Of a stretch of DNA of 64,000 bases, positions 22,082 through 64,000 are shown one piece after another. Made by a program: the position numbers and the translations under genes. The stretch lies in assembly GCF_018977255.1 (NCBI RefSeq), contig NW_024704745.1, positions 15,252,001 to 15,316,000 on the forward strand. The letters run 5' to 3'. Source of the stretch: Callorhinchus milii (lineage: Eukaryota). The notes beneath the pieces are model-generated. The model was not told where the DNA came from and did no database searches. It saw only the letters and a program-made list of their open reading frames with translations. Numbering within the stretch: the first letter of the stretch is position 1; each line of letters begins with the position of its first letter.

Positions 22082-22082
22082 G

Positions 22083-25746: not shown

Positions 25747-27236
25747 CTAAGAGCAATAAAACGACGATTCCAAATGATTTCTCCTATCTGGGAACTTTTT
25801 AAGGAAGCCTTTCAGCATTTCAGTAGCCTGCAGGTGCGATTCCGAATTGTACAAAGACAACGAAAGTAACAGCTGGTTGACAATGTTCATCAAACAATCT
25901 TCGATCTCTTTCAGATCGCCATCAAGCTGGAAGCCGTCCTTCCTGGTCGCCAAGCGAACGCAGATGTTTCTTAACTCCACGCTGAGCTACAAATCAACAA
26001 CAACAACAACAACAAGATTCCATTTATAAAGCGCCTTTCACGTCAGGAGGACGTCCCAAGGCGCTGCACAGTTGGGTCATGACCCGAGCAGGGGGGAAAT
26101 GGTCAGGGTGAGGGGAGGGAAGGGAGGGAGCGAGGAGGGGGAAATGGTCAGGGTGAGGGAGGGGAGGGAGGGAGCGAGGAGGGGGGAAATGGTCAGGGTG
26201 AGGGGAGGGAAGGGAGGGAGCGAGGAGGGGGAAGAGAGTCGAGAGGGGAGCTGAAGGCTCGGTCAAAGAGAAAGGTTTTGAGACCGGCCTTGAAGGAGGA
26301 AAGGGAGGAAGCAAGGCGAAGGCACTGGGGGATGGAGTTCCAGAGCCTGGGGGCTGAGAGGCTGAAGGCCCAACCACCGATGGTAGGGCGGTTGGGGCGG
26401 GGGACGTGGAGCAGACCGGAGCCAGAGGAACGGAGGGTACGGGCAGGTAGGTAGGGGGATAGTAGGTCGGAGAGATAGGAGGGAGCAAGGCCGTGAATGG
26501 CCTTGTAATAAACAATAAACAATTAAACAAGAAGATATATTAGCAAAATGCAAATATTGGATTTGCCAATTTTTGCCAATTCACCACACACACATTGAAA
26601 AAAATCAAATGCACAGCGCAAGCTGATTTATGTGTCTCTATCTGACATTGGCGGTTAGGTTTTTCTTGATTATTAATATTGGCAGTGAGATATTTACCAA
26701 AGCTGTACACTCAAACGGTGACACAGGTGAGCGAAGAGGTTTGCACTCCCTCGTTTTAAACAGCAAAGAGTTGCCATTATTTCTTCGCGCATCTGCTTTA
26801 AGGATGAGCGCGACAATAAAGTGGGTGTACACGTCGATGGGAAGTAGAAGTTTTCAGGACCTGCGTGTCACCCCCCACCCCCTCTCCCCCTCCCCCCCTC
26901 CCTCCCTCTCCTTTACCCACAAGATGCCACTCTCACCTTTAATTCCACAGGGAAGAAGTGTGGCTCCGGCAAAGGGCACAGTCCGCGCTGCTCCACGGCG
27001 GTCAGTTCGGAAGTCAGGTCCACGAAGCGGCTCAGTTTGCTCTCTCTGGCCATGTGGGCAATGGTCCGCCGGCTGTGCGGAGGACCCGGCGGGTGGCGGG
27101 TGGCCGGGCAGGGCTGGTCCGGGCAGGGCTGGTCCGGACCAATGCATCGCTCGCTCTCCAGCCTCTGCCGCAGGGTCTTCAGAGCCACCCACTGGTGGTC
27201 GATGCACGTCTGCAAAGCGGCTGCTGGTCTGTGCAT
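25747..27236 (-). CDS. DLEU7: DLEU7 homologue copy 1: exon 1 27236-26937, exon 2 25986-25747, 179 aa
   Basis: MHRPAAALQTCIDHQWVALKTL..IAHMARESKLSRFVDLTSELTAVEQ..FPVELK|LSVELRNICVRLA..FQLDGDLKEIEDCLMNIVNQLLLSL..FPD parallels recalled human [56 protein letters not shown]; phase-0 AAG|gtgag and ttgtag| sites. Confidence 0.88.
25996..26507 (-). mobile_element. 5'-truncated L2 insertion in the DLEU7 intron (also about 30674-31186, 33274-33789, 35878-36375, 43442-43957, 63971 onward; partial at 45803-45918)
   Basis: YKAIHGLAPSYLSDLL..APRLWNSIP..FKAGLKTFLFDRAF* plus (gtt)n tail; empty site visible in copies 2, 7, 8 and 9. Confidence 0.9.
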
Positions 27237-28348
27237 CGTCGAAGCAGCGGCAAAGATTCACTGCTGAGGGATGGGGTGGGATGGTGGGGGCATGTGGGTG
27301 GGGTGGGGGTGGTCGCTGCAAACTGCACTCCTCAATGAGTGTCTCCCCCCCCCCCCACCGCCACCCCCTTGTTTTTGGTACCCCAGATCAGCTAAAAGTT
27401 TCTGCTCTCATCAGCCCCCTCACCAATAGCTTTCTGCCGCGTGTACACCCAAAGCGATAACACTTTTATCACTGGAAGAAGACTTTGCATATATGGAGAG
27501 CATTTTTTTTTTTGGGGGGGTGGGATGGAGTTGTCACTCTGGGGGGGGCAGTAAAGCTATGCCTTACTTTTCCAGATATGCAGGGTCTTGGGTATTCTTT
27601 AAAATATTCTAGGTTTGAGTGATCACATTGTTAGTGTCATTTCTGAGCAATATACAAGTGTGCTGATATCTCTCCATCTAAAGTGAACAGTAGCATATCT
27701 AAGATTGACTGTTCCCAGCAGATTTTACTCAGTCCAAAGCATATCTAATAAAAACAAGTTGCACAATTATATTTCCTCACACACACAATGTCAAATTATT
27801 TATTTTGTGTTTGCATGACATTAATTTCAGCTGAACTAGCATAGAAAAAAGGATACTTTATGAATGCCTGCAGAATTAAATTAATACAAAATCTTACCCT
27901 TTTTTCAATGCGTGTGTGGTGAATTGGCAAAAGATGCATAAACAGTGCAATGACTTGTAAGAAGTACAGTATAAGTAACACTAAGGTGATAAGCATTTCT
28001 TAAGAATTTGAAAGTGATGCATAATCCATTGGGAACAGCTCCAGCATGTCACCAAAGGTACATGTGATGATGTCCTTACATTGATGGCCTCCTTGTTCAG
28101 ATTGTTTGAACCGCAGGATCTCTCAGACTTTCCAACTAACAGCAACTTGCATTTATATAGCATCCATCACTCAGGGCAGTAACTCGGAGCATCTAAAAGT
28201 GGCGGAACCCAAACTGGGGGGAGAGAGGAGGTGACCGTAAGCACAGTCGAAGAGGAAGCGATCTAAAGAAAGGGGAAGGAGGGGGCAGGTGGGGGATTGG
28301 GGAGAGAGAGTTCCAAAGCTTTGGGGGCAAATAACACATTATCTTACA

Positions 28349-29302
28349 CTAAGAGCAATAAAACGATGATTCCAAATGATTTCTCCTATCTGGGAACTTT
28401 TTAAGGAAGCCTTTCAGCATTTCAGTAGCCTGCAGGTGCGATTCCGAATTGTACAAAGACAACGAAAGTAACAGCTGGTTGACAATGTTCATCAAACAAT
28501 CTTCGATCTCTTTCAGATCGCCATCAAGTTGGAAGCCGTCCTTCCTGGTCGCCAAGCGAACGCAGATGTTTCTTAACTCCACGCTGAGCTACAAATCAAA
28601 TAAACAAGAAGATCTATTAGCAAAATGCAAATATTGGATTTGCCAATTTTTGCCAATTCACCACACACACATTGAAAAAAATCAAATGCACAGCGCGAGC
28701 TGATTTATGTGTCTCGATCTGACATTGGCGGTCAGGTTTTTCTTGATTATTAATATTGGCAGTGAGATATTTACCAAAGCTGTACACTCAAACGGTGACA
28801 CAGGTGAGCGAAGAGGTTTGCACTCCCTCGTTTTAAACAGCAAAGAGTTGCCATTATTTCTTCGCGCATCTGCTTTAAGGATGAGCGCGACAATAAAGTG
28901 GGTGTACACGTCGATGGGAAGTAGAAGTTTTCAGGACCTGTGTGTCACCCCCCACCCCCTCTCCCTCCCTCCCTCCCCTTACCCACAAGATGCCCCTCTC
29001 ACCTTTAGTTCAACAGGGAAGAAGTGTGGCTCCGGCAAAGGGCACAGTCCGCGCTGCTCCACGGCGGTCAGTTCGGAAGTCAGGTCCACGAAGCGGCTCA
29101 GTTTGCTCTCTCTGGCCATGTGGGCAATGGTCCGCCGGCTGTGCGGAGGACCCGGCGGGTGGCGGGTGGCCGGGCTGGGCTGGTCCGGGCAGGGCTGGTC
29201 CGGACCAATGCATCGCTCGCTCTCCAGCCTCTGCCGCAGGGTCTTCAGAGCCGCCCACTGGTGGTCGATGCACGTCTGCAAAGCGGCTGCTGGTCTGTGC
29301 AT
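28349..29302 (-). CDS. DLEU7: DLEU7 homologue copy 2: exons 29302-29003, 28588-28349; 414-nt intron without L2
   Basis: Near-identical to copy 1, open frame, splice sites intact. Confidence 0.88.
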
Positions 29303-30424: not shown

Positions 30425-31910
30425 CTAAGAGCAATAAAACGATGATTCCAAATGATTTCTCCTATCTGGGAACTTTTTAAGGAAGCCTTTCAGCATTTCA
30501 GTAGCCTGCAGGTGCGATTCCGAATTGTACAAAGACAACGAAAGTAACAGCTGGTTGACAATGTTCATCAAACAATCTTCGATCTCTTTCAGATCGCCAT
30601 CAAGCTGGAAGCCGTCCTTCCTGGTCGCCAAGCGAACGCAGATGTTTCTTAACTCCACGCTGAGCTACAAATCAACAACAACAACAACAACAAGATTCCA
30701 TTTATAAAGCGCCTTTCACGTCAGGAGGACGTCCCAAGGCGCTGCACAGTTGGGTCATGACCCGAGCAGGGGGGAAATGGTCAGGGTGAGGGGAGGGAAG
30801 GGAGGGAGCGAGGAGGGGGGAAATGGTCAGGGTGAGGGGAGGGGAGGGAGGGAGCGAGGAGGGGGGAAATGGTCAGGGTGAGGGGAGGGAAGGGAGGGAG
30901 CGAGGAGGGGAAGAGAGTCGAGAGGGGAGCTGAAGGCTCGGTCAAAGAGAAAGGTTTTGAGACCGGCCTTGAAGGAGGAAAGGGAGGAAGCAAGGCGAAG
31001 GCACTGGGGGATGGAGTTCCAGAGCCTGGGGGCTGAGAGGCTGAAGGCCCGACCACCGATGGTAGGGCGGTTGGGGCGGGGGACGTGGAGCAGACCGGAG
31101 CCAGAGGAACGGAGGGTACGGGCAGGTAGGTAGGGGGATAGTAGGTCGGAGAGATAGGAGGGAGCAAGGCCGTGAATGGCCTTGTAATAAACAATAAACA
31201 ATTAAACAAGAAGATATATTAGCAAAATGCAAATATTGGATTTGCCAATTTTTGCCAATTCACCACACACACATTGAAAAAAATCAAATGCACAGCGCAA
31301 GCTGATTTATGTGTCTCGATCTGACATTGGCGGTCAGGTTTTTCTTGATTATTAATATTGGCAGTGAGATATTTACCAAAGCTGTACACTCAAACGGTGA
31401 CACAGGTGAGCGAAGAGGTTTGCACTCCCTCGTTTTAAACAGCAAAGAGTTGCCATTATTTCTTCGCGCATCTGCTTTAAGGATGAGCGCGACAATAAAG
31501 TGGGTGTACACGTCGATGGGAAGTAGAAGTTTTCAGGACCTGTGTGTCACCCCCCACCCCCTCTCCCCCTCCCCCCTCCTCCCTCCCTTACCCACAAGAT
31601 GCCCTCTCACCTTTAATTCCACAGGGAAGAAGTGTGGCTCCGGCAAAGGGCACAGTCCGCGCTGCTCCACGGCGGTCAGTTCGGAAGTCAGGTCCACGAA
31701 GCGGCTCAGTTTGCTCTCTCTGGCCATGTGGGCAATGGTCCGCCGGCTGTGCGGAGGACCCGGCGGGTGGCGGGTGGCCGGGCTGGGCTGGTCCGGGCAG
31801 GGCTGGTCCGGACCAATGCATCGCTCGCTCTCCAGCCTCTGCCGCAGGGTCTTCAGAGCCGCCCACTGGTGGTCGATGCACGTCTGCAAAGCGGCTGCTG
31901 GTCTGTGCAT
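30425..31910 (-). CDS. DLEU7: DLEU7 homologue copy 3: exons 31910-31611, 30664-30425
   Basis: Open frame, splice sites intact, L2 in intron. Confidence 0.88.
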
Positions 31911-33024: not shown

Positions 33025-34509
33025 CTAAGAGCAATAAAACGATGATTCCAAATGATTTCTCCTATCTGGGAACTTTTTAAGGAAGCCTTTCAGCATTTCA
33101 GGAGCCTGCAGGTGCGATTCCGAATTGTACAAAGACAACGAAAGTAACAGCTGGTTGACAATGTTCATCAAACAATCTTCGATCTCTTTCAGATCGCCAT
33201 CAAGCTGGAAGCCGTCCTTCCTGGTCGCCAAGCGAACGCAGATGTTTCTTAACTCCACGCTGAGCTACAAATCAACAACAACAACAACAACAACAAGATT
33301 CCATTTATAAAGCGCCTTTCACGTCAGGAGGACGTCCCAAGGCGCTGCACAGTTGGGTCATGACCCGAGCAGGGGGGAAATGGTCAGGGTGAGGGGAGGG
33401 AAGGGAGGGAGCGAGGAGGGGGGAAATGGTCAGGGTGAGGGGAGGGAGGGAGGGAGCGAGGAGGGGGGAAATGGTCAGGGTGAGGGGAGGGAAGGGAGGG
33501 AGCGAGGAGGGGGAAGAGAGTCGAGAGGGGAGCTGAAGGCTCGGTCAAAGAGAAAGGTTTTGAGACCGGCCTTGAAGGAGGAAAGGGAGGAAGCAAGGCG
33601 AAGGCACTGGGGGATGGAGTTCCAGAGCCTGGGGGCTGAGAGGCTGAAGGCCCGACCACCGATGGTAGGGCGGTTGGGGCGGGGGACGTGGAGCAGACCG
33701 GAGCCAGAGGAACGGAGGGTACGGGCAGGTAGGTAGGGGGATAGTAGGTCGGAGAGATAGGAGGGAGCAAGGCCGTGAATGGCCTTGTAATAAACAATAA
33801 ACAAATAAACAAGAAGATATATTAGCAAAATGCAAATATTGGATTTGCCAATTTTTGCCAATTCACCACACACACATTGAAAAAANTCAAATGCACAGCG
33901 CAAGCTGATTTATGTGTCTCGATCTGACATTGGCGGTCAGGTTTTTCTTGATTATTAATATTGGCAGTGAGATATTTACCAAAGCTGTACACTCAAACGG
34001 TGACACAGGTGAGCGAAGAGGTTTGCACTCCCTCGTTTTAAACAGCAAAGAGTTGCCATTATTTCTTCGCGCATCTGCTTTAAGGATGAGCGCGACAATA
34101 AAGTGGGTGTACACGTCGATGGGAAGTAGAAGTTTTCAGGACCTGTGTGTCACCCCCCATCCCCTCTCCCCCTCTCCCCTTCCCCTTACCCACAAGATGC
34201 CCCTCTCACCTTTAATTCCACAGGGAAGAAGTGTGGCTCCGGCAAAGGGCACAGTCCGCGCTGCTCCACGGCGGTCAGTTCGGAAGTCAGGTCCACGAAG
34301 CGGCTCAGTTTGCTCTCTCTGGCCATGTGGGCAATGGTCCGCCGGCTGTGCGGAGGACCCGGCGGGTGGCGGGTGGCCGGGCTGGGCTGGTCCGGGCAGG
34401 GCTGGTCCGGACCAATGCATCGCTCGCTCTCCAGCCTCTGCCGCAGGGTCTTCAGAGCCGCCCACTGGTGGTCGATGCACGTCTGCAAAGCGGCTGCTGG
34501 TCTGTGCAT
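33025..34509 (-). CDS. DLEU7: DLEU7 homologue copy 4: exons 34509-34210, 33264-33025 (QAT>QAP)
   Basis: Open frame, splice sites intact, L2 in intron. Confidence 0.88.
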
Positions 34510-35628: not shown

Positions 35629-37109
35629 CTAAGAGCAATAAAACGACGATTCCAAATGATTTCTCCTATCTGGGAACTTTTTAAGGAAGCCTTTCAGCAT
35701 TTCAGTAGCCTGCAGGTGCGATTCCGAATTGTACAAAGACAACGAAAGTAACAGCTGGTTGACAATGTTCATCAAACAATCTTCGATCTCTTTCAGATCG
35801 CCATCAAGTTGGAAGCCGTCCTTCCTGGTCGCCAAGCGAACGCAGATGTTTCTTAACTCCACGCTGAGCTACAAATCAACAACAACAACAACAACAAGAT
35901 TCCATTTATAAAGCGCCTTTCACGTCAGGAGGACGTCCCAAGGCGCTGCACAGTTGGGTCATGACCCGAGCAGGGGGGAAATGGTCAGGGTGAGGGGAGG
36001 GAAGGGAGGGAGCGAGGAGGGGGGAAATGGTCAGGGTGAGGGGAGGGGAGGGAGGGAGCGAGGAGGGGGGAAATGGTCAGGGTGAGGGGGGAAGGGAGGG
36101 AGCGAGGAGGGGGAAGAGAGTCGAGAGGGGAGCTGAAGGCTCGGTCAAAGAGAAAGGTTTTGAGACCGGCCTTGAAGGAGGAGGCGAAGGCACTGGGGGA
36201 TGGAGTTCCAGAGCCTGGGGGCTGAGAGGCTGAAGGCCCGACCACCGATGGTAGGGCGGTTGGGGCGGGGGACGTGGAGCAGACCGGAGCCAGAGGAACG
36301 GAGGGTACGGGCAGGTAGGTAGGGGGATAGTAGGTCGGAGAGATAGGAGGGAGCAAGGCCGTGAATGGCCTTGTAATAAACAATAAACAAATAAACAAGA
36401 AGATATATTAGCAAAATGCAAATATTGGATTTGCCAATTTTTGCCAATTCACCACACACACATTGAAAAAAATCAAATGCACAGCGCGAGCTGATTTATG
36501 TGTCTCGATCTGACATTGGCGGTCAGGTTTTTCTTGATTATTAATATTGGCAGTGAGATATTTACCAAAGCTGTACACTCAAACGGTGACACAGGTGAGC
36601 GAAGAGGTTTGCACTCCCTCGTTTTAAACAGCAAAGAGTTGCCATTATGTCTTCGCGCATCTGCTTTAAGGATGAGCGCGACAATAAAGTGGGTGTACAC
36701 GTCGATGGGAAGCAGAAGTTTTCAGGACCTGTCCTGTGTGTCACCCCCCACCCCCTCTCCCCCTCCCTCCCTCCCTCCCTCTCCTTTACCCACAAGATGC
36801 CCCTCTCACCTTTAATTCCACAGGGAAGAAGTGTGGCTCCGGCAAAGGGCACAGTCCGCGCTGCTCCACGGCGGTCAGTTCGGAAGTCAGGTCCACGAAG
36901 CGGCTCAGTTTGCTCTCTCTGGCCATGTGGGCAATGGTCCGCCGGCTGTGCGGAGGACCCGGCGGGTGGCGGGTGGCCGGGCTGGGCTGGTCCGGGCAGG
37001 GCTGGTCCGGACCAATGCATCGCTCGCTCTCCAGCCTCTGCCGCAGGGTCTTCAGAGCCACCCACTGGTGGTCGATGCACGTCTGCAAAGCGGCTGCTGG
37101 TCTGTGCAT
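35629..37109 (-). CDS. DLEU7: DLEU7 homologue copy 5: exons 37109-36810, 35868-35629
   Basis: Open frame, splice sites intact, L2 in intron, long 5' flank retained. Confidence 0.88.
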
Positions 37110-37904
37110 CGTCGAAGCAGCGGCAAAGATTCACTGCTGAGGGATGGGGTGGGATGGGTGGGGGTGGGGGTGGATCGCTGCAAACTGCACTCCTCAATGA
37201 GTGTCCCCCCCCCCCCGCCACCCCCTTGTTTTTGGTACCCCAGATCAGCTAAAAGTTTCTGCTCTCATCAGCCCCCTCACCAATAGCTTTCTGCCGCGTG
37301 TACACCCAAAGCGATAACACTTTTATCACTGGAAGAAGACTTTGCATATATGGAGAGCATTTTTTTTGTGGGGGGTGGGGGGTGGGGTGGGTTGGGGGGA
37401 TGAAAAGAACCAGCAAAGTTACCGACAGGGAGGTTTCCAGTTGCTAGAAGATTTCACCAGCAAATCCCAATTAGGCAGCAAAGAAAAAAAATACCCCCCC
37501 CCCCTTCTCCCCCACACCCACCCCCCACACACACATGTTCCATCAATGAGATTTGGTTACATCGAGTTTACATAGCAATACATCTATCTTGAAGCACATG
37601 GGTGTTTTGACTGAATCGCCTGAATTAGACGTTATTGCGATCACACCCAGTCTGCACCGCCTGTTTTCGTTCACGAATTGCTGGTCAATTCAAATGCAAA
37701 AATCGAGACGATGGCTTTGGCGTTGTAGTTATTCATTGCCAGGAAAGACCCTTTGAAAGAAGCGTCTGGCGCTTCAAGGGAAGCTGTCTGCAGGAGGTGA
37801 TAAACTGCTGCAGTTTGATGATCAGCAGCTGAACCGAGATACCTGGATGCAAGGATCACAACTCTCGATTTGATGTACTGCAATACACTCTGTGGCACAA
37901 ACTG

Positions 37905-38116
37905 CCACAATAATCCCTCCAAAACCCCAAACAATAATAAATCGGTCATTTTCAACCTACGATTGTCTGTGGGACATTGCTGTGCCCGCACTTGGCTGCC
38001 GCGTTCGCCCACAAATATACAGTCAATTCACTTTACAGTGTGTTCTGTGAAGCACTTTGGGATGTCCTCCCGACGTGAAAAGCGCTATATCAAATTCAAG
38101 GATTATTATTATTATT
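37905..38116 (+). mobile_element. Headless Deu-SINE in the DLEU7 5'-flank module (repeated at about 39185, 45492, 47459, 55024, 56301 and 57579)
   Basis: Central domain and tail of the SINE family, no tRNA head. Confidence 0.8.
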
Positions 38117-38210
38117 AACAGAAAAAAAATACCGTGCGTGCTAAATATTAGAGGTGCTGCATTAAGTGCCAGGCCCTTGCAGGGACCGGCCCTTGCAGGG
38201 ACCGGCCCTT

Positions 38211-38583
38211 GCTCCTCCACCCCCCGCACTGTCTCATGTGGTGTCCCTCAGGGCTCTGTCCTGGGTCCCCTCCTCTTCACCCTCTATATGCTCCCCCTCG
38301 GTGACATCATCCGCAGACATGGAGTTAACTTCCACATGTATGCGGATGACACCCAACTCTACCTTTCCTCCTCTCCTCTCAACTCCACGACCACCGATGT
38401 CCTGACAGCCTGCCTGTCCGACATCGAGTCCTGGACGAGAGACAACTTTCTTCAGCTCAACGTGCGAAAAACCGAGGCCCTCCTGATTGGCTCACGTCAG
38501 CGCCTCCGCACCTCAGGCGCTGACACCATCAGCATCCAAGGCTACACTCTCCACCTCTCAAAGCCAGTCAGGAACCTCGGCGT
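38211..38583 (+). mobile_element. L2 reverse-transcriptase core fragment
   Basis: [43 protein letters not shown]. Confidence 0.92.
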
Positions 38584-39447
38584 GATAACACTTTTATCAC
38601 TGGAAGAAGACTTTGCATACATGGAGAGCATTTTTTTTGTGGTTGGGGGGTGGGGTGGGATGGGGTGGGGTGGGGGGATGAAAAGAACCAGCAAAGTTAC
38701 CGACAGGGAGGTTTCCAGTTGCTAAAAGATTTCACCAGCAAATCCCAATTAGGCAGCAAAGAAAAAAAAATACCCCCTCCCTTCTCCCCCACACCCACCC
38801 CCCCCACACACATTTTCCATCAATGAGATTTGGTTACATCGAGTTTACATAGCAATACATCTATCTTGAAGCACATGGGTGTTTTGACTGAATCGCCTGA
38901 ATTAGACGTTATTGCGATCACACCCAGTCTGCACCGCCTGTTTTCGTTCACGAATTGCTGGTCAATTCAAATGCAAAAATCGAGACGATGGCTTTGGCGT
39001 TGTAGTTATTCATTGCCAGGAAAGACCCTTTGAAAGAAGCGTCTGGCGCTTCAAGGGAAGCTGTCTGCAGGAGGTGATAAACTGCTGCAGTTTGATGATC
39101 AGCAGCTGAACCGAGATACCTGGATGCAAGGATCACAACTCTCGATTTGATGTACTGCAATACAGTCTGTGGCACAAACTGCCACAATAATCCCTCCAAA
39201 ACCCCAAACAATAATAAATCGGTCATTTTCAACCTACGATTGTCTGTGGGACATTGCTGTGCCCGCACTTGGCTGCCGCGTTCGCCCACAAATATACAGT
39301 CAATTCACTTTACAGTGTGTTCTGTGAAGCACTTTGGGATGTCCTCCCGACGTGAAAAGCGCTATATCAAATGCAAGGATTATTATTATTATTAACAGAA
39401 AAAAAATACCATGTGTGCTAAATATTAGAGATGCTGCATTAAGTGCC

Positions 39448-39693
39448 CGGCCCTTGCAGGGACCGGCCCTTGCAGGGACCGGCCCTTGCAGGGACCGGCC
39501 CTTGCAGGGACCGGCCCTTGCAGGGACCGGCCCTTGCAGGGACCGGCCCTTGCAGGGACCGGCCCTTGCAGGGACCGGCCCTTGCAGGGACCGGCCCTTG
39601 CAGGGACCGGCCCTTGCAGGGACCGGCCCTTGCAGGGACCGGCCCTTGCAGGGACCGGCCCTTGCAGGGACCGGCCCTTGCAGGGACCGGCCC
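39448..39693. repeat. 16-bp minisatellite, variant GCAGGGACCGGCCCTT
   Basis: About 15 homogeneous units. Confidence 0.95.
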
Positions 39694-39944
39694 AGGGGTG
39701 GGGTGATTGGCAGGGAGGGCGTGTCGGGGCGGGGCGGGTGACTCGCGGGCGGGGCGGGTGACTGGCAGGGAGGGCGGGGCGGGGCGGGTGACTGGCAGGG
39801 AGGGCGGGGCGGGGCGGGTGACTGGCAGGGAGGGCGGGGCGGGTGACTGGCAGGGAGGGCGGGGCGGGGCGGGTGACTGGCAGGGAGGGCGGGGCGGGGC
39901 GGATTTCCTGGTGCCCCCCCGCCTCCTGCACTCGGTGCAGCGCT

Positions 39945-39996
39945 GTGAGTGGGAGAGACGCTGTTGTGATCCTCTCTGCAGCGAGAACCCGAATGG
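39945..39996 (+). pseudogene. ACAT2: ACAT2 exon 1 copy 2 (donor GT>GG)
   Basis: VSGRDAVVILSAARTRM(G), followed by ggaaca. Confidence 0.75.
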
Positions 39997-40037
39997 GGAA
40001 CACAGAGAGAGCAGCGCCACAGACGGACAGCGAGTTG

Positions 40038-40253
40038 GGACCCCCGGACACTGGGGGGGGGACCCCCGGACACTGGGGGGGGACCCCCGGACACTGGGGG
40101 GGGACCCCCGGACACTGGGGGGGACCCCCGGACACTGGGGGGGGACCCCGGACACTGGGGGGGACCCCGGACACTGGGGGGGACCCCCGGACACTGGGGG
40201 GGGACCCCGGACACTGGGGGGGGACCCCCGGACACTGGGGGGACCCGGACACT
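40038..40253. repeat. About 20-bp minisatellite GGGACCCCCGGACACTGGGG after ACAT2 exon 1
   Basis: About 11 units here; 3-5 units at about 22741, 48181 and 58655. Confidence 0.9.
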
Positions 40254-46349: not shown

Positions 46350-46654
46350 CTTCAATTCCACAGGGAAGAAGTGTGGCTCCGGCAAAGGGCACAGTCCGCG
46401 CTGCTCCACGGCGGTCAGTTCGGAAGTCAGGTCCACGAAGCGGCTCAGTTTGCTCTCTCTGGCCATGTGGGCAATGGTCCGCCGGCTGTGCGGAGGACCC
46501 GGCGCGTGGCGGGTGGCCGGGCTGGGCTGGTCCGGGCAGGGCTGGGCTGGTCCGGGCCAATGCATCGCTCGCTCTCCAGCCTCTGCCGCAGGGTCTTCAG
46601 AGCCACCCACTGGTGGTCGATGCACGTCTGCAAAGCGGCTGCTGGTCTGTGCAT
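46350..46654 (-). pseudogene. DLEU7: DLEU7 orphan exon 1 with +5 frameshift
   Basis: 305 nt instead of 300 (extra gggct), stop after 69 aa; its own exon 2 is missing. Confidence 0.85.
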
Positions 46655-48089: not shown

Positions 48090-48141
48090 GTGAGTGGGAG
48101 AGACGCGGTTGTGATCCTCTCCGCAGCGAGAACCCGAATGG
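48090..48141 (+). pseudogene. ACAT2: ACAT2 exon 1 copy 3
   Basis: VSGRDAVVILSAARTRM(G)|gtaaca. Confidence 0.75.
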
Positions 48142-51100
48142 GTAACACAGAGAGAGCAGCGCCACAGACGGACAGCGGGTGGGGACCCCCGGACACTGGG
48201 GGGGGACCCCCGGACACTGGGGGGGGACCCCCGGACACTGGGGGGGGGACCCCCGGACACTGGGGGGGGACCCCCGGACACTGGGGGTGTGTGTGTGTGT
48301 GTGGAGGCGCTGTAAGGTTTGCATTTAAGTACTGGAAATTCATTGCATTTCCCTCTGTTTTCTAACCTCTCTGAGGATCTGTGGCGTTTAGTTCTAAGGC
48401 TACCAACTGCCCTCCAGTAATAACTCAATCCAAGTCACAGGTGTGTTAGTTGCTTCTTTATTTTGTCTTTCCAAACTCTCAGTAAAGCACCACTTTACAT
48501 CACACATTCTTTGTTCTCACTCCCAGTATCCTTTTATACTTTCTTTCATTGGCTCCTGTTAATTGATCCCAATTGAGTATTCAACAGACATGAGCTGCAG
48601 AGTTCCGGATGATTTGCAGTTTGTGGAGGGAAAAGTTGGGATGGCTGACAAGCAGGGAGTTGGCATAGTCAAGCCTGGATGTGAAGAACGGGTGAATTAA
48701 GCTTACACTATAGAGGGTTACATTATAGACAATATATCTCATGTAAAGATTATTATTCTAAACCTGTATTGATGTCCATCCTAGGTCAGGCAATAGGGAG
48801 GAGTACTTAGCTGGGAATGAAGGTTTATTGGAGGGAATTGTTAGTAGCAGGCATAACTGTATTCTGTTTGGTGATGAGTTTATTGTCTTCTGATAATCTC
48901 CATATGTCTTTCTTCCTTCAATTCCTGTCCATCTCCCATCACTCTGCCTATGTGTGAGAATGCGTGTGTCTCTTTCATGAGTCTTTATCTTTTAATTTTG
49001 TCTGTCTCCTGCAAATTGTGAGCTATATTCATTTGTTCTTTCTCATTTTTCATTCTCTTTTCCCTCATTCACTCTCTCTTTCACAGTCAGTCACATCGCT
49101 ATCTCTTTCTGTATATTTAGTTAAAAATAATAATGTATTAATAATGCATTGCATTTGATACAGCACCTTATCATTCTCAAAGTACTTCACAAAATATACT
49201 GTAAAGTGAATTGACTGTATGTTTTGCGGGTGAAACGAGGCAGCCAATTGCGCACAGCAGTGTCCTACAAACAGTCATGGATTAATACATAAAGAAAGCC
49301 TCTTTGCCTTCCAAAACTGTGGGGATTAGAGATTAATGAACAAGGTTGTTGGTATCATATCTTGGATTTTAGCAACGCAGTGATCATTTAAGTGTGAAGC
49401 AAGATCCAATTTGTGCTTACTCATCACCTTGAGCAGATAGGCTCAGATGCATATTAGTTTGCATTGGCTGCCCTTTGAGCGTACTTGGGCAATCCATTGA
49501 AAAGTCGCAAGATTTCAAAGGACCGTTCTTTAATGTTACAAAGAGTTGTTCTCAAGCTTCCCTGATGACCTAATGGATAAAGGGCCAGCACAAAGGTGTA
49601 TAAGCAAAGATTGCAGACAGACTGAATTGATATAGACAGAACAGCAACTGGGACAGTTAATCTCAGTGCTCCTTTCACCAATTACTAGTCTAAATTCAGT
49701 CCTCGCACAAACTTGATGACTGAATGGTCTGCTAGAACATCGTATGTTTCTACACAGTGGGAGGAGCTGGGGATGAAACACTGATTCCTGGGACACCACT
49801 TGTCACTATAATAAATAATTATCCTTGCTTTTGTTATGGCGCTGTTCATATCAGGAAGATGGCTCAAAGTGCTTTACATGAGTTACTTAAAGCGTTGTGA
49901 AAATGATTATTTTGTAGAAAAACACAGTAGCCAATTTGTCACATCTAACATCCCATAAACAGCCATGAGGTGAATGATCAATTTTGTCTGGGAATTTTGG
50001 CCAGGATACCGGGAGAAACTCTTTTCTCCCTGCACTTCCCTTCTTCACTGCCTTCTAATTAGAGACTGTCCATTTTATCACCAAAATTCAGCTTCCCAAC
50101 TAAGTTCCTATCCATCACACACAACTGTCTCCATTTCCACGTTATTAATTCCATGTAGGAAAATGTAGGATGTGTCTGTATCCCAGCACTTGTAGTACAA
50201 ACTGTTTAACAATTTGCTTCACCAGTGATATTATCCTGTTTCTGATTTCCACATTCTTTACAGTGCTATTAAAGGCTGTTTGGTAGTGTAGTAGCAATAT
50301 TATGTTATCAATTACCCTGAATCACACAACAAACATTCGGTCCTGAATTCAACACATATCTTGTCTCGCTAATGCTGTACTTTTGGGATTGGGTGAATAT
50401 GTTATTAGACACAGAAATGGCCAAACCGTACAAAGCTATGCCTTACTTTTCCAGATATGCAGGGTCTTGGGTATTCTTTAAAATATTCTAGGTTTGAGTG
50501 ATCACATTGTTAGTGTCATTTCTGAGCAATATACAAGTGTGCTGATATCTCTCCATCTAAAGTGAACAGTAGCATATCTAAGATTGACTGTTCCCAGCAG
50601 ATTTTACTCAGTCCAAAGCATATCTAATAAAAACAAGTTGCACAATTATATTTCCTCACACACACAATGTCAAATTATTTATTTTGTGTTTGCATGACAT
50701 TAATTTCAGCTGAACTAGCATAGAAAAAAGGATACTTTATGAATGCCTGCAGAATTAAATTAATACAAAATCTTACCCTTTTTTCAATGTGTGTGTGGTG
50801 AATTGGCAAAAGTTGCATAAACAGTGCAATGACTTGTAAGAAGTACAGTATAAGTAACACTAAGGTGATAAGCATTTCTTAAGAATTTGAAAGTGATGCA
50901 TAATTCATTGGGAACAGCTCCAGCATGTCACCAAAGGTACATGTGATGATGTCCTTACATTGATGGCCTCCTTGTTCAGATTGTTTGAACCTCAGGATCT
51001 CTCAGATTTTCCAACTAACAGCAACTTGCATTTATACAGCATCCATCACTCAGGGCAGTAACTCGGAGCATCTAAAAGTGGCGGAACCCAAACTGGGGGG

Positions 51101-51228: not shown

Positions 51229-52151
51229 CTAAGAGCAATAAAACGACGATTCCAAATGATTTCTCCTATCTGGGAACTTTTTAAGGAAGCCTTTCAGCAT
51301 TTCAGTAGCCTGCAGGTGCGATTCCGAATTGTACAAAGACAACGAAAGTAACAGCTGGTTGACAATGTTCATCAAACAATCTTCGATCTCTTTCAGATCG
51401 CCATCAAGTTGGAAGCCGTCCTTCCTGGTCGCCAAGCGAACGCAGATGTTTCTTAACTCCACGCTGAGCTACAAATCAAATAAACAAGAAGATCTATTAG
51501 CAAAATGCAAATATTGGGCGTTGAATCAAATGCACAGCGCGAGCTGATTTATGTGTCTCGATCTGACATTGGCGGTCAGGTTTTTCTTGATTATTAATAT
51601 TGGCAGTGAGATATTTACCAAAGCTGTACACTCAAACGGTGACACAGGTGAGCGAAGAGGTTTGCACTCCCTCGTTTTAAACAGCAAAGAGTTGCCATTA
51701 TTTCTTCGCGCATCTGCTTTAAGGATGAGCGCGACAATAAAGTGGGTGTACACGTCGATGGGAAGCAGAAGTTTTCCGGACCTGTCCTGTGTGTCACCCC
51801 CCACCCCCTCTCCCCCTCCCTCCCTCCCCTTACCCACAAGATGCCCCTCACCTTTAATTCCACAGGGAAGAAGTGTGGCTCCGGCAAAGGGCACAGTCCG
51901 CGCTGCTCCACGGCGGTCAGTTCGGAAGTCAGGTCCACGAAGCGGCTCAGTTTGCTCTCTCTGGCCATGTGGGCAATGGTCCGCCGGCTGTGCGGAGGAC
52001 CCGGCGGGTGGCGGGTGGCCGGGCTGGGCTGCTCCGGGCTGGGCTGGTCCGGGCCAATGCATCGCTCGCTCTCCAGCCTCTGCCGCAGGGTCTTCAGAGC
52101 CACCCACTGGTGGTCGATGCACGTCTGCAAAGCGGCTGCTGGTCTGTGCAT
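51229..52151 (-). CDS. DLEU7: DLEU7 homologue copy 7: exons 52151-51852, 51468-51229; shortest intron
   Basis: Open frame (PDQPSPEQPS variant); lacks both the L2 and the inverted insert. Confidence 0.88.
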
Positions 52152-53253: not shown

Positions 53254-54222
53254 CTAAGAGCAATAAAACGACGATTCCAAATGATTTCTCCTATCTGGGA
53301 ACTTTTTAAGGAAGCCTTTCAGCATTTCAGTAGCCTGCAGGTGCGATTCCGAATTGTACAAAGACAACGAAAGTAACAGCTGGTTGACAATGTTCATCAA
53401 ACAATCTTCGATCTCTTTCAGATCGCCATCAAGTTGGAAGCCGTCCTTCCTGGTCGCCAAGCGAACGCAGATGTTTCTTAACTCCACGCTGAGCTACAAA
53501 TCAAATAAACAAGAAGATATATTAGCAAAATGCAAATATTGGATTTGCCAATTTTTGCCAATTCACCACACACACATTGAAAAAAATCAAATGCACAGCG
53601 CGAGCTGATTTATGTGTCTCGATCTGACATTGGCGGTCAGGTTTTTCTTGATTATTAATATTGGCAGTGAGATATTTACCAAAGCTGTACACTCAAACGG
53701 TGACACAGGTGAGCGAAGAGGTTTGCACTCCCTCGTTTTAAACAGCAAAGAGTTGCCATTATTTCTTCGCGCATCTGCTTTAACGATGAGCGCGACAATA
53801 AAGTGGGTGTACACGTCGATGGGAAGTAGAAGTTTTCAGGACCTGTCCTGTGTGTCACCCCCCACCCCCTCTCCCCCTCCCTCCCTCCCTCCCTCCCCTT
53901 ACCCACAAGATGCCCCTCTCACCTTTAATTCCACAGGGAAGAAGTGTGGCTCCGGCAAAGGGCACAGTCCGCGCTGCTCCACGGCGGTCAGTTCGGAAGT
54001 CAGGTCCACGAAGCGGCTCAGTTTGCTCTCTCTGGCCATGTGGGCAATGGTCCGCCGGCTGTGCGGAGGACCCGGCGGGTGGCGGGTGGCCGGGCAGGGC
54101 TGGTCCGGGCAGGGCTGGTCCGGGCCAATGCATCGCTCGCTCTCCAGCCTCTGCCGCAGGGTCTTCAGAGCCACCCACTGGTGGTCGATGCACGTCTGCA
54201 AAGCGGCTGCTGGTCTGTGCAT
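53254..54222 (-). CDS. DLEU7: DLEU7 homologue copy 8: exons 54222-53923, 53493-53254
   Basis: Open frame, no L2 in intron. Confidence 0.88.
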
Positions 54223-57831: not shown

Positions 57832-58093
57832 AGGCCCTCGCAGGGACCGGCCCTCGCAGGGACCGGCCCTCGCAGGGACCGGCCCTCGCAGGGACCGGCC
57901 CTCGCAGGGACCGGCCCTCGCAGGGACCGGCCCTCGCAGGGACCGGCCCTCGCAGGGACCGGCCCTCGCAGGGACCGGCCCTCGCAGGGACCGGCCCTCG
58001 CAGGGACCGGCCCTCGCAGGGACCGGCCCTCGCAGGGACCGGCCCTCGCAGGGACCGGCCCTCGCAGGGACCGGCCCTCGCAGGGACCGGCCC
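57832..58093. repeat. 16-bp minisatellite, variant GCAGGGACCGGCCCTC
   Basis: About 16 homogeneous units. Confidence 0.95.
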
Positions 58094-58562
58094 AAGGGTG
58101 GGGTGATTGGCAAGGAGGGCGTGTCGGGGCGGGGCGGGTGACTCGCGGGGCGGGGCGGGTGACTGGCAGGGAGGGCGGGGCGGGGCGGGTGACTGGCAGG
58201 GAGTGCGGGGCGGGGCGGGGCGGTTGACTCGCGGGGCGGGCGGGTGACTGGCAGGGAGGGCGGGGCGTGGCGGGTGACTGGCAGGGAGGGCGGGGCGGGT
58301 GACTGGCAGGGAGGGCGGGGCGGGTGACTGGCAGGGAGGGCGGGGCGGGTGACTGGCAGGGAGGGCGGGGCGGCGGGTGACTGGCAGGGAGGGCGGGGCG
58401 GGGCGGGTGACTGGCAGGGAGGCGGGGGGGGTGAATGGCAGGAGGGCGGGGCGGGTGACTGGCAGGGAGGGCGGGGCGGGGCGGGTGACTGGCAGGGAGG
58501 GCGGGGCGGGGCGGATTTCCTGGTGCCCCCCCCACCCCTTCTCCTGCACTCGGTGCAGCGCT

Positions 58563-58614
58563 GTGAGTGGGAGAGACGATGTTGTGATCCTCTCCGCAAC
58601 GAGAACCCCAATGG
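58563..58614 (+). pseudogene. ACAT2: ACAT2 exon 1 copy 4
   Basis: VSGRDDVVILSATRTPM(G)|gtaaca. Confidence 0.75.
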
Positions 58615-61600
58615 GTAACACAGAGAGAGCAGCGCCACAGACGGACAGCGGGTGGGGACCCCCGGACACTGGGGGGGACCCCCGGACACTGGGGGGGGAC
58701 CCCCGGACACTGGGGGTGTGTGTGTGTGTGTGGAGGCGCTGTAAGGTTTGCATTTAAGTACTGGAAATTCATTGCATTTCCCTCTGTTTTCTAACCTCTC
58801 TGAGGATCTGTGGCGTTTAGTTCTAAGGCTACCAACTGCCCTCCAGTAATAACTCAATCCAAGTCACAGGTGTGTTAGTTGCTTCTTTATTTTGTCTTTC
58901 CAAACTCTCAGTAAAGCACCACTTTACATCACACATTCTTTGTTCTCACTCCCAGTATCCTTTTATACTTTCTTTCATTGGCTCCTGTTAATTGATCCCA
59001 ATTGAGTATTCAACAGACATGAGCTGCAGAGTTCCGGATGATTTGCAGCTTGTGGAGGGAAAAGTTGGGATGGCTGACAAGCAGGGAGTTGGCATAGTCA
59101 AGCCTGGATGTGAAGAACGGGTGAATTAAGCTTACACTATAGAGGGTTACATTATAGACAATATATCTCATGTAAAGATTATTATTCTAAACCTGTATTG
59201 ATGTCCATCCTAGGTCAGGCAATAGGGAGGAGTACTTAGCTGGGAATGAAGGTTTATTGGAGGGAATTGTTAGTAGCAGGCATCACTGTATTCTGTTTGG
59301 TGATGAGTTTATTGTCTTCTGATAATCTCCATATGTCTTTCTTCCTTCAATTCCTGTCCATCTCCCATCACTCTGCCTATGTGTGAGAATGCGTGTGTCT
59401 CTTTCATGAGTCTTTATCTTTTAATTTTGTCTGTCTCCTGCAAATTGTGAGCTATATTCATTTGTTCTTTCTCATTTTTCATTCTCTTTTCCCTCATTCA
59501 CTCTCTCTTTCACAGTCAGTCACATCGCTATCTCTTTCTGTATATTTAGTTAAAAATAATAATGTATTAATAATGCATTGCATTTGATACAGCACCTTAT
59601 CATTCTCAAAGTACTTCACAAAATATACTGTAAAGTGAATTGACTGTATGTTTTGCGGGTGAAACGAGGCAGCCAATTGCGCACAGCAGTGTCCTACAAA
59701 CAGTCATGGATTAATACATAAAGAAAGCCTCTTTGCCTTCCAAAACTGTGGGGATTAGAGATTAATGAACAAGGTTGTTGGTATCATATCTTGGATTTTA
59801 GCAACGCAGTGATCATTTAAGTGTGAAGCAAGATCCAATTTGTGCTTACTCATCACCTTGAGCAGATAGGCTCAGATGCATATTAGTTTGCATTGGCTGC
59901 CCTTTGAGCGTACTTGGGCAATCCATTGAAAAGTCGCAAGATTTCAAAGGACCGTTCTTTAATGTTACAAAGAGTTGTTCTCAAGCTTCCCTGATGACCT
60001 AATGGATAAAGGGCCAGCACAAAGGTGTATAAGCAAAGATTGCAGACAGACTGAATTGATATAGACAGAACAGCAACTGGGACAGTTAATCTCAGTGCTC
60101 CTTTCACCAATTACTAGTCTAAATTCAGTCCTCGCACAAACTTGATGACTGAATGGTCTGCTAGAACATCGTATGTTTCTACACAGTGGGAGGAGCTGGG
60201 GATGAAACACTGATTCCTGGGACACCACTTGTCACTATAATAAATAATTATCCTTGCTTTTGTTATGGCGCTGTTCATATCAGGAAGATGGCTCAAAGTG
60301 CTTTACATGAGTTACTTAAAGCGTTGTGAAAATGATTATTTTGTAGAAAAACACAGTAGCCAATTTGTCACATCTAACATCCCATAAACAGCCATGAGGT
60401 GAATGATCAATTTTGTCTGGGAATTTTGGCCAGGATACCGGGAGAAACTCTTTTCTCCCTGCACTTCCCTTCTTCACTGCCTTCTAATTAGAGACTGTCC
60501 ATTTTATCACCAAAATTCAGCTTCCCAACTAAGTTCCTATCCATCACACACAACTGTCTCCATTTCCACGTTATTAATTCCATGTAGGAAAATGTAGGAT
60601 GTGTCTGTATCCCAGCACTTGTAGTACAAACTGTTTAACAATTTGCTTCACCAGTGATATTATCCTGTTTCTGATTTCCACATTCTTTACAGTGCTATTA
60701 AAGGCTGTTTGGTAGTGTAGTAGCAATATTATGTTATCAATTACCCTGAATCACACAACAAACATTCGGTCCTGAATTCAACACATATCTTGTCTCGCTA
60801 ATGCTGTACTTTTGGGATTGGGTGAATATGTTATTAGACACAGAAATGGCCAAACCGTACAAAGCTATGCCTTACTTTTCCAGATATGCAGGGTCTTGGG
60901 TATTCTTTAAAATATTCTAGGTTTGAGTGATCACATTGTTAGTGTCATTTCTGAGCAATATACAAGTGTGCTGATATCTCTCCATCTAAAGTGAACAGTA
61001 GCATATCTAAGATTGACTGTTCCCAGCAGATTTTACTCATTCCAAAGCATATCTAATAAAAACAAGTTGCACAATTATATTTCCTCACACACACAATGTC
61101 AAATTATTTATTTTGTGTTTGCATGACATTAATTTCAGCTGAACTAGCATAGAAAAAAGGATACTTTATGAATGCCTGCAGAATTAAATTAATACAAAAT
61201 CTTACCCTTTTTTCAATGTGTGTGTGGTGAATTGGCAAAAGTTGCATAAACAGTGCAATGACTTGTAAGAAGTACAGTATAAGTAACACTAAGGTGATAA
61301 GCATTTCTTAAGAATTTGAAAGTGATGCATAATTCATTGGGAACAGCTCCAGCATGTCACCAAAGTTACATGTGATGATGTCCTTACATTGATGGCCTCC
61401 TTGTTCAGATTGTTTGAACCTCAGGATCTCTCAGATTTTCCAACTAACAGCAACTTGCATTTATACAGCATCCATCACTCAGGGCAGTAACTCGGAGCAT
61501 CTAAAAGTGGCGGAACCCAAACTGGGGGGAGAGAGGAGGTGACCGTAAGCACAGTCGAAGAGGAAGCCATCTAAAGAAAGGGGAAGGAGGGGGCAGGTGG

Positions 61601-61657: not shown

Positions 61658-62602
61658 CTAAGAGCAATAAAACGACGATTCCAAATGATTTCTCCTATCT
61701 GGGAACTTTTTAAGGAAGCCTTTCAGCATTTCAGTAGCCTGCAGGTGCGATTCCGAATTGTACAAAGACAACGAAAGTAACAGCTGGTTGACAATGTTCA
61801 TCAAACAATCTTCGATCTCTTTCAGATCGCCATCAAGTTGGAAGCCGTCCTTCCTGGTCGCCAAGCGAACGCAGATGTTTCTTAACTCCACGCTGAGCTA
61901 CAAATCAAATAAACAAGAAGATCTATTAGCAAAATGCAAATATTGGATTTGCCAATTTTTGCCAATTCACCACACACACATTGAAAAAAATCAAATGCAC
62001 AGCGCGAGCTGATTTATGTGTCTCGATCTGACATTGGCGGTCAGGTTTTTCTTGATTGTTAATATTGGCAGTGAGATATTTACCAAAGCTGTACTCTCAA
62101 ACGGTGACACAGGTGAGCGATGAGGTTTGCACTCCCTCGTTTTAAACAGCAAAGAGTTGCCATTATTTCTTCGCGCATCTGCTTTAAGGATGAGCGCGAC
62201 AATAAAGTGGGTGTACACGTCGATGGGAAGTAGAAGTTTTCAGGACCTGTGTGTCACCCCCCACCCCCTCTCCCCCTCCCTCTCTCCCTCCCCTTACCCA
62301 CAAGATGCCCCTCTCACCTTTAATTCCACAGGGAAGAAGTGTGGCTCCGGCAAAGGGCACAGTCCGCGCTGCTCCACGGCGGTCAGTTCGGAAGTCAGGT
62401 CCACGAAGCGGCTCAGTTTGCTCTCTCTGGCCATGTGGGCAATGGTCCGCCGGCTGTGCGGAGGACCCGGCGGGTGGCGGGTGGCCGGGCTGGGCTGGTC
62501 CGGACCAATGCATCGCTCGCTCTCCAGCCTCTGCCGCAGGGTCTTCAGAGCCACCCACTGGTGGTCGATGCACGTCTGCAAAGCGGCTGCTGGTCTGTGC
62601 AT
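61658..62602 (-). CDS. DLEU7: DLEU7 homologue copy 9: exons 62602-62318, 61897-61658; 174 aa
   Basis: Open frame, one PDQPx unit fewer (15 nt, in frame). Confidence 0.88.
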
Positions 62603-63721
62603 CGTCGAAGCAGCGGCAAAGATTCACTGCTGAGGGATGGGGTGGGATGGTGGGGGTGGGGGTGGGGTGGGGGTGGGTGTGGATCGCTGCAAACTGCACT
62701 CCTCAATGAGTGTCTCCCCCCCCCCCCCCACCGCCACCCCCTTGTTTTTGGTACCCCAGATCAGCTAAAAGTTTCTGCTCTCAACAGCCCCCTCACCAAT
62801 AGCTTTCTGCCGCGTGTACACCCAAAGCGATAACACTTTTATCACTGGAAGAAGACTTTGCATATATGGAGAGCATTTTTTTTTTTGGGGGGGTGGGATG
62901 GAGTTGTCACTCTGGGGGGGCAGTAAAGCTATGCCTTACTTTTCCAGATATGCAGGGTCTTGGGTATTCTTTAAAATATTCTAGGTTTGAGTGATCACAT
63001 TGTTAGTGTCATTTCTGAGCAATATACAAGTGTGCTGATATCTCTCCATCTAAAGTGAACAGTAGCATATCTAAGATTGACTGTTCCCAGCAGATTTTAC
63101 TCAGTCCAAAGCATATCTAATAAAAACAAGTTGCACAATTATATTTCCTCACACACACAATGTCAAATTATTTATTTTGTGTTTGCATGACATTAATTTC
63201 AGCTGAACTAGCATAGAAAAAAGGATACTTTATGAATGCCTGCAGAATTAAATTAATACAAAATCTTACCCTTTTTTCAATGTGTGTGTGGTGAATTGGC
63301 AAAAGATGCATAAACAGTGCAATGACTTGTAAGAAGTACAGTATAAGTAACACTAAGGTGATAAGCATTTCTTAAGAATTTGAAAGTGATGCATAATCCA
63401 TTGGGAACAGCTCCAGCATGTCACCAAAGGTACATGTGATGATGTCCTTACATTGATGGCCTCCTTGTTCAGATTGTTTGAACCTCAGGATCTCTCAGAC
63501 TTTCCAACTAACAGCAACTTGCATTTATACAGCATCCATCACTCAGGGCAGTAACTCGGAGCATCTAAAAGTGGCGGAACCCAAACTGGGGGGAGAGAGG
63601 AGGTGACCGTAAGCACAGTCGAAGAGGAAGCGATCTAAAGAAAGGGGAAGGAGGGGGTAGGTGGGGGGATTGGGGAGAGAGAGTTCCAAAGATTTGGGGG
63701 CAAATAACACATTATCTTACA

Positions 63722-63961
63722 CTAAGAGCAATAAAACCACGATTCCAAATGATTTCTCCTATCTGGGAACTTTTTAAGGAAGCCTTTCAGCATTTCAGTA
63801 GCCTGCAGGTGCGATTCCGAATTGTACAAAGACAACGAAAGTAACAGCTGGTTGACAATGTTCATCAAACAATCTTCGATCTCTTTCAGATCGCCATCAA
63901 GCTGGAAGCCGTCCTTCCTGGTCGCCAAGCGAACGCAGATGTTTCTTAACTCCACGCTGAG
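63722..63961 (-). CDS. DLEU7: DLEU7 homologue copy 10, exon 2 only (exon 1 would lie beyond the window)
   Basis: Open exon 2 ending ESWFYCS*, acceptor intact. Confidence 0.8.
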   Translation of the reverse strand, partial: LSVELRNICVRLATRKDGFQLDGDLKEIEDCLMNIVNQLLLSLSLYNSESHLQATEMLKGFLKKFPDRRNHLESWFYCS

Positions 63962-64000
63962 CTACAAATCAACAACAACAACAACAACAACAAGATTCCA

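Follow-up and report, generated by a model that had tools for sequence, protein, structure and literature searches.

Is the series of small, nearly identical genes seen in one region of the elephant shark genome a real amplification of a single gene, and how would such a series have been built and kept? The question is raised by a stretch of 64,000 nucleotides (nt) of Callorhinchus milii (RefSeq assembly GCF_018977255.1, contig NW_024704745.1, positions 15,252,001 to 15,316,000), referred to here as the window, in which a two-exon gene of the DLEU7 family recurs on the minus strand. Our analysis indicates that the locus probably arose by a real and recent amplification of the entire DLEU7 gene unit into a nested tandem array, each unit (2.1–2.6 kb) running from about 325 nt ahead of exon 1, through both exons and the intron between them, to a 3' region that includes AATAAA.

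Copies were detected by blastn with both exons of one copy as queries against the window. Ten matches to exon 1 (identity 94.0–100%) and ten to exon 2 (98.75–100%) were obtained, all on the minus strand and all beyond 25.7 kb. These form nine complete two-exon genes (c1 to c9), the exon 2 of a tenth gene (c10) cut by the window end, and a frameshifted orphan exon 1; the frame is open in 9 of the 10 exon-1 copies and in 10 of the 10 exon-2 copies. Exon 1 extends over 300 nt (285 nt in c9) from the ATG to an AAG/GTGAG donor that is the same in every copy, and exon 2 over 240 nt including the TAG stop, behind a TTGTAG/CTC acceptor found in every copy. The intron is in phase 0 throughout, giving a product of 100 + 79 = 179 amino acids (aa; 174 aa in c9), and AATAAA lies 545 nt past the stop in each unit. 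An earlier interpretation made from the letters alone (the sequence-only reading) had proposed at least nine complete DLEU7 copies in tandem, spliced in phase 0 at these sites into a 179-aa protein, in units of 2.0–2.6 kb; all of this holds in the nine complete pairs, c9 being shorter by its deletion, with unit periods of 2075–2605 nt. Its description of a recent array of intact copies likewise agrees with the young, direct tandem of 94–100% identity observed here, and its account of the elements lacked an eleventh, the orphan exon 1.

The introns fall into two length classes, 383–429 nt and 941–954 nt, the longer of which carries a 530-nt insert resembling a short interspersed nuclear element (SINE). 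In c1 (25747–27236; exon 2 at 25747–25986, exon 1 at 26937–27236) the intron measures 950 nt with the insert, and the product is the RefSeq form labelled P0008 (V17, C38, C43). The next gene, c2 (28349–29302; exon 2 at 28349–28588, exon 1 at 29003–29302), has a short intron of 414 nt and the P0007 form (A17), with its AATAAA at 27799–27804. Three long-intron genes follow: c3 (30425–31910; exon 2 at 30425–30664, exon 1 at 31611–31910; 946-nt intron; P0007), c4 (33025–34509; exon 2 at 33025–33264, exon 1 at 34210–34509; 945-nt intron holding the single N of the window at 33886; P0004, with T155P) and c5 (35629–37109; exon 2 at 35629–35868, exon 1 at 36810–37109; 941-nt intron; P0003). Farther along, c6 (43193–44686; exon 2 at 43193–43432, exon 1 at 44387–44686) has a 954-nt intron and again the P0003 form. 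The orphan exon 1 at 46350–46654 is a pseudogene on the minus strand in which a 5-nt insertion causes a frameshift and premature stops; it has no exon 2, and its intron remnant is broken within the SINE-like insert and fused to another repeat, the Z module described below. Short introns recur in c7 (51229–52151; exon 2 at 51229–51468, exon 1 at 51852–52151; 383 nt; P0001, with C38S and D40E), c8 (53254–54222; exon 2 at 53254–53493, exon 1 at 53923–54222; 429 nt; P0008) and c9 (61658–62602; exon 2 at 61658–61897, exon 1 at 62318–62602; 420 nt), the last encoding the 174-aa P0006 form, in which a 15-nt in-frame deletion removes one PDQPC repeat unit. The exon 2 of c10 (63722–63961, minus strand) carries S176W and matches the P0002 suffix, its exon 1 lying past the window end.

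The identity of these genes was examined by a Pfam scan of each exon separately in two copies. Exon 1 alone passes the DLEU7 family (PF15760, cut-off 27 bits) with 31.2 and 32.4 bits over profile positions 83–126/129, and exon 2 alone passes it with 31.8 bits over positions 130–193 of 194, the ranges of the two exons abutting. Exon 2 also gave a MazG match with E 0.19 and 12.5 bits, below the cut-off of 22; this was rejected as chance. In the protein search with the exon-1 open reading frame (ORF), one of 2 candidates is a 179-aa 'leukemia-associated protein 7-like' of C. milii. The 90% cluster of this protein contains 9 sequences, that is, 8 RefSeq forms and one 118-aa UniRef entry that crosses the exon junction, and the RefSeq forms, named 'leukemia-associated protein 7(-like)', have 12 XP accessions, all on one contig of 81,177,816 nt. 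In 9/9 complete copies the exon-1 translation is an exact prefix and the exon-2 translation an exact suffix of a RefSeq protein, and the lengths sum. The profile scores, the family-invariant residues and the RefSeq name firmly identify the array genes, by their sequence, as DLEU7, the identity that the sequence-only reading had set out as a test. The P0005 form and a third P0008 accession have no counterpart within the window, and if one accession stands for one gene, about two further copies would lie outside it. The array is thus already in the public NCBI annotation of C. milii as gene models. Of the earlier statement that no description of it was known, one part stands, as no paper on the array was found in full-text searches judged by titles and abstract starts, with subscription journals and supplements outside their scope; the other does not, given the 12 annotated protein accessions. 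A young tandem gene array is a well-known type of event; the gene affected here is not known to be multi-copy elsewhere.

Comparison with the DLEU7/LEU7 family of other vertebrates supports the assignment and, among the proteins searched, sets C. milii apart in copy number. In a phmmer search of 1.84 billion representatives, exon 2 had 22 matches at E ≤ 0.001, all at the C-terminal end of proteins of 69–274 aa. The ten that were looked up are DLEU7/LEU7 proteins, from gar, bowfin, bamboo shark, epaulette shark and lungfish as well as ratite birds, a frog, teleosts and sturgeons. A profile search built on a 16-sequence alignment, which rests on shared words, is non-exhaustive and covers proteins of sharks and bony vertebrates, scored 8000 candidates, of which 66 proteins reached E ≤ 1e-5. 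Within these candidates, each named species has one DLEU7 protein, including the sharks Chiloscyllium, Hemiscyllium, Pristiophorus and Heptranchias, and polyploids (salmonids, carps, suckers) have two; a 9-member single-species cluster occurs only in C. milii, and no other holocephalan DLEU7 is present. Measured against these proteins, the expansion may be specific to the lineage, as the sequence-only reading had proposed. In the 16-sequence alignment, of which P0008 is the first row, the C. milii protein keeps all 13 invariant and 5 nearly invariant columns, together with the N-terminal H-Q motif. It thus resembles its relatives in the two exons that each score above the profile cut-off, in the invariant residues, in its RefSeq name and in size (179 aa, as compared with 139–274 aa), but differs in number: the window has no fewer than 10 gene units and RefSeq lists 12 accessions, against one or two proteins in other named species. 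The C-terminus also differs: the family usually ends at FPD(I/V), whereas the C. milii proteins extend 12 residues (RRNHLESSFYCS) beyond it (in exon 2, for example at 28349–28390). According to PMC13005343, DLEU7 is among the fast-evolving genes not retrieved in squamates.

The setting of the array may agree with this assignment. An ORF piece at 618–704 on the minus strand weakly matches five RNase H2 subunit B chains (E 0.0047–0.011, query residues 68–96) and has no Pfam match at E ≤ 0.01. In human, DLEU7 lies next to RNASEH2B. The piece at 618–704 is a probable RNASEH2B exon, the remainder of that gene falling outside the window, and would place the array in synteny with the DLEU7 neighbourhood.

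How the copies are arranged was revealed by self-alignment of the window, in which all long self-matches are in direct orientation and follow a nested design. The sequence-only reading had placed the start of the array at 25747; repeated DNA in fact begins at about 22318 and is organized in higher-order blocks built of four modules. Module X (1048 nt, ten copies, the first at 24950–25997) comprises the 3' flank and exon 2, and module Y the intron and exon 1, together with some 325 nt upstream of the latter. Module T, a spacer of about 2.6–3 kb that opens with 16-mer and 30-mer minisatellites, has four copies (22318–24949, ~39490–42395, 47747–50431 and 57871–60860), each opening one block. Module Z, with a period of about 1275 nt, has seven copies, starting at 37313, 38584, 44889, 46857, 54425, 55703 and 56980; the Z modules (first run at 37313–39489) contain an RVT_1 fragment of a long interspersed nuclear element (LINE) on the plus strand and a 113-aa ORF on the minus strand. 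Block 1 reads T, five XY units and two Z; block 2, T, one XY, Z, the orphan Y and Z; block 3, T, two XY and three Z; and block 4, T, one XY and then the X of c10 at the window end. Where Z follows Y, the sequence runs on as the gene's own upstream flank; judged by this continuity, the Z modules are the ancestral 5' flank of the gene.

Minisatellites lie at the starts of the higher-order blocks (22082–22600, 39447–39902, 47775–48043 and 57833–58514). They consist of G-rich 16-mers (..CCCTGCAGGGA..) and 30-mers, and one or two units of the 16-mer are also found within the LINE fragment of Z. The 113-aa ORF of Z (37671–38012, minus strand; copies at 38948, 45257, 47224, 54789, 56066 and 57344) is open in 7 of 7 modules, with no Pfam family and no Atlas match. 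We rejected it as a gene: with 8 nonsynonymous and 0 synonymous sites and no relatives, it is probably a chance ORF in DNA derived from transposable elements (TEs).

A piece of about 24 nt at the unit junction (27527–27552, and also at 29603, 32202, 34807, 52432 and 62900) is identical at 6/6 Y-then-X junctions, and no other occurrence with up to 2 mismatches exists in the window on either strand. Since all six unit junctions share it, a single founding non-homologous duplication followed by unequal crossing-over is indicated, and its presence in blocks 1, 3 and 4 suggests that the founding event predates the block duplications or spread across them. The SINE-like insert (25998–26527, minus strand, 530 nt) ends in (TTG)n and is separated from the exon-2 acceptor downstream by 11 nt; it is present in c1, c3, c4, c5, c6 and c10 and absent from c2, c7, c8 and c9. 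Despite its short intron, c2 has V17A and one synonymous exon-2 variant in common with the long-intron genes next to it, c3 and c4, and it groups with these two in the tree of module X, which points to sequence exchange between units.

From this anatomy we infer a three-step history. One non-homologous duplication would have joined the 5' flank of the gene to its 3' flank, leaving the ~24-nt junction piece; unequal crossing-over and gene conversion between units would then have multiplied and homogenized them; and larger blocks, in which a T spacer is combined with one to five gene units and between one and three Z, may finally have been duplicated at the TE-derived minisatellites. In its head-to-tail repeats with one shared junction and 94–100% identity, in the mosaic sharing of variants between neighbours and in its one decayed member, the array resembles the young, lineage-specific tandem clusters that a founding duplication, unequal crossing-over and concerted evolution produce. 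By comparison with these, it is nested, with short units inside blocks of 8–17 kb bounded by TE-derived minisatellites, and the amplified gene has no known multi-copy state elsewhere.

Whether the copies are held open by selection was addressed through the differences among them. At the protein level these are V17A, C38S, S43C, D40E (c7), T155P, S176W (c10) and the 15-nt in-frame deletion of c9, and five synonymous sites vary as well. The sequence-only reading had correctly listed V17A, C38S, S43C, T155P and the 15-nt indel; its list was incomplete in lacking D40E and S176W, and its statement that the differences are only missense or in-frame does not stand in view of the five synonymous sites. 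Across ungapped columns of the nine complete copies, 6 of 285 are variable in exon 1, 3 of 240 in exon 2, 26 of 370 in the intron, 10 of 248 upstream and 10 of 796 in the 3' flank. The exons are less variable than intron and upstream DNA together (p = 0.0003), and not significantly less variable than all non-coding DNA (p = 0.089). Indels outside the exons and 3' flank concentrate in G/C runs. In the Pfam-matched part (codons 57–179) there are 2 nonsynonymous and 4 synonymous sites (2N:4S, p = 0.024), a partition chosen post hoc, and the control ORF of module Z (8N:0S) differs from DLEU7 (6N:5S) at a one-sided p of 0.040. Constraint on the conserved domain is hinted at by this weak signal, which is not proof; the earlier caution, that with copies so recent an open frame is no proof of selection, is confirmed by the weakness of the N:S and variability tests.

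Independent sequencing runs provide a further view of the locus. There are 24 runs, all available as Logan contigs, 23 of them under a single organism label and the remaining one from a marine plankton metagenome. Four of them (X13, X15, X5 and X1) were mapped on 22700–27600; none is recorded as RNA, so that RNA labels are guesses, and, as the tool itself warns, holes in contig coverage prove nothing. X1 covers all bins, including the intron and the DNA between units, and therefore behaves as DNA. In X5, depth reaches 251.7 in the exon-2 bin, 258 in the exon-1 bin and 37–81 in the 3' flank, and is 0 in the unique intron bin 26636–26799 and at 27292–27600. Such a pattern would be expected of spliced RNA, the RNA label of X5 being itself a guess. 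Suggestive only are a 266-letter X5 contig that stops at the exon-1 donor with 36 letters unplaced, and a 126-letter X13 contig that stops at the exon-2 acceptor. At place 25927, two exon-2 variants are both present in X5 (119.8 of 303.8), and the sole 3' untranslated region (3'-UTR) contig of this run has a c9-private letter. At least some copies appear to be transcribed. The SINE-like insert has a very high contig depth in all four runs. In the plankton metagenome run (X17), 6% of the sampled words of 21300–27300 occur, which may reflect repeat sequence or environmental DNA.

Several results weigh against reading the locus as a real amplification of whole DLEU7 gene units. Among the copies, the exons are not less variable than the 3' flank (9/525 versus 10/796, p = 0.49), and indels are equally rare in both (1 each), so that the contrast fails as a test of selection. 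The whole coding sequence (CDS) gives 5N:5S (dN/dS ~0.29, one-sided p = 0.054), which is not significant, and with S176W of c10 the split becomes 6N:5S (p = 0.081). The trees of modules X and Y are unresolved, with no well-supported branch. In the runs, X13 and X15 (2013, guessed to be RNA) have a depth of 0 on exon 1 and of at most 10.7 on exon 2, and no exon-exon joint is found among the 15 of 113 joints listed. Furthermore, X1 contigs with 4, 2 and 3 exact occurrences in the assembly have depths of 174.8, 176.3 and 242.1, respectively; depth does not scale with occurrence, and no copy number is derivable from it.

Part of this evidence is what would be expected if the array were real and a neutral by-product of an unstable, repeat-rich region, with a few working copies and the rest young, homogenized passengers, an explanation that we consider possible, if on the unlikely side. 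The equal variability of exons and 3' flank and the non-significant whole-CDS ratio fit it, as do the decay of one unit to a frameshifted orphan exon and the equal amplification of the non-genic modules T and Z, and the c9 type of the sole X5 3'-UTR contig hints that few copies dominate expression. The open frames in 9 of 10 exon-1 and all exon-2 copies argue in the other direction, as do the synonymous excess in the conserved domain, post hoc as it is, and the difference between DLEU7 and the control ORF. If X5 is RNA, its two exon-2 variants at 25927 also indicate that transcription is not limited to a single copy type or allele.

What the protein does was approached through a predicted structure and the mammalian literature. 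AlphaFold2, run on the 16-row alignment, predicts six helices with a mean predicted local distance difference test score (pLDDT) of 81.8 and a predicted template-modelling score (pTM) of 0.75; pLDDT falls to 53–58 at residues 31–50, the PDQP(C/S) stretch in which most amino-acid differences and the 15-nt deletion are located. Foldseek returned nothing at E ≤ 0.001 (best E 0.55). The THATCH core of HIP1R was considered as a fold relative (VIA-align Z 11.5, root-mean-square deviation 3.1 over 144 residues; HHM 11.2) and rejected, such a Z being common for helical bundles. The model thus supports only an elongated helical bundle as the predicted fold and nothing more specific. The copies would encode near-identical 179-aa helical proteins with all family-invariant residues. 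Function has been studied only in mammals, where DLEU7 is reported to repress NF-kB by binding and inactivating TACI and BCMA (PMC3616974). By analogy, this function may carry over to the chimaera, and the array would then, on balance, raise the dose of a protein reported to damp NF-kB via TACI/BCMA in mammals. That the array is, beyond this, kept by selection as a copy-number-variable dosage device, giving chimaeras an approximately tenfold dose of a helical TACI/BCMA-like signalling inhibitor, with copy number varying by individual or sex and tuning NF-kB in B cells or the germline, appears improbable to us; if true, the elephant shark would serve as a natural model for over-expression of a barely understood gene.

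It is also quite improbable that the assembler inflated or mis-ordered the copies and that the true locus has far fewer units. The reference was assembled from noisy long reads (PacBio continuous long reads, Falcon, Dovetail scaffolding; PMC12952989), many upstream and intron differences are length changes in G or C runs, and X1 contig depths are near-flat (156–242) across modules of unlike copy number in the assembly, all of which would fit such an error. Against it, the copies are told apart by clean variants, structural ones as well as substitutions, that occur in consistent combinations, and the blocks differ in unit numbers and junction types beyond simple stutter. Discrete variants, namely the insert of 530 nt, the deletion of 15 nt and the frameshifted orphan, would not result from collapse or duplication errors. 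In addition, at 8 of the 9 places checked, the 'other letters' in runs from different studies are those carried by further copies in the window, the ninth place lying within the SINE-like insert, and paralogous variants of the assembly therefore recur in the data of other studies. Letters private to single copies recur in the same way: an X1 contig carries a five-letter combination private to c5, the c9-private letter is seen in X5, and X1 shows both paralogous letters at place 27110.

The least convincing alternative, highly improbable in our judgement, is that diversifying selection drives the paralogues apart in a low-complexity stretch near the N-terminus (codons 17–43), so that they gain different partners: 4 of 6 nonsynonymous sites do fall there, outside the Pfam-matched part, as does the 15-nt deletion, but the stretch is the least conserved part of the family and that of lowest model confidence, its PDQP(C/S) repeat is prone to slippage, and the numbers are too small for any test.

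A different comparison is suggested by the ampliconic families of sex chromosomes, in which many near-identical copies of a small gene are kept open. The C. milii copies differ from these in being direct tandems rather than palindromes, on an 81-Mb contig. A sex-chromosome link of the locus was considered and rejected, as nothing in the accessible part of PMC12952989 ties the array to a sex chromosome; the holocephalan X candidate described there is a scaffold of about 500 kb from another species.

Other features of the window lie ahead of the array. An ORF at 17248–17571 on the plus strand encodes a CD80-like C2-set immunoglobulin domain (PF08205, E 7.7e-12). A 265-aa ORF at 20654–21451 on the minus strand has a Tc5 transposase DNA-binding domain (PF03221, E 5.5e-17) and represents a pogo/Tigger-like transposon remnant just ahead of the array. 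ARAGORN reports six transfer RNA (tRNA)-like matches of tRNA-Ala and tRNA-Glu types (1931–2002, 4491–4562, 4833–4904, 6021–6083, 15866–15937 and 21456–21527); none lies within the array, at least one adjoins a SINE body, and they are probably the heads of tRNA-derived SINEs. A GC-rich low-complexity zone at 6408–8631 (GC 0.67) contains GGGCCT 53 times, a 44–46-mer 15 times and a 23-mer 37 times, and may be the CpG-rich promoter region of a neighbouring gene.

The 13q14 region, which is deleted in chronic lymphocytic leukaemia, includes DLEU7, and the functional literature on this gene is very sparse. The probable amplification described here is of modest weight in that it opens no long-standing question, being a documented oddity rather than a new kind of discovery. 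It provides a worked example of how a founding junction and unequal crossing-over build a nested array, and, as a natural amplification to some twelve copies in a genome that is compact and evolves slowly, it offers a comparative handle on DLEU7 dose.

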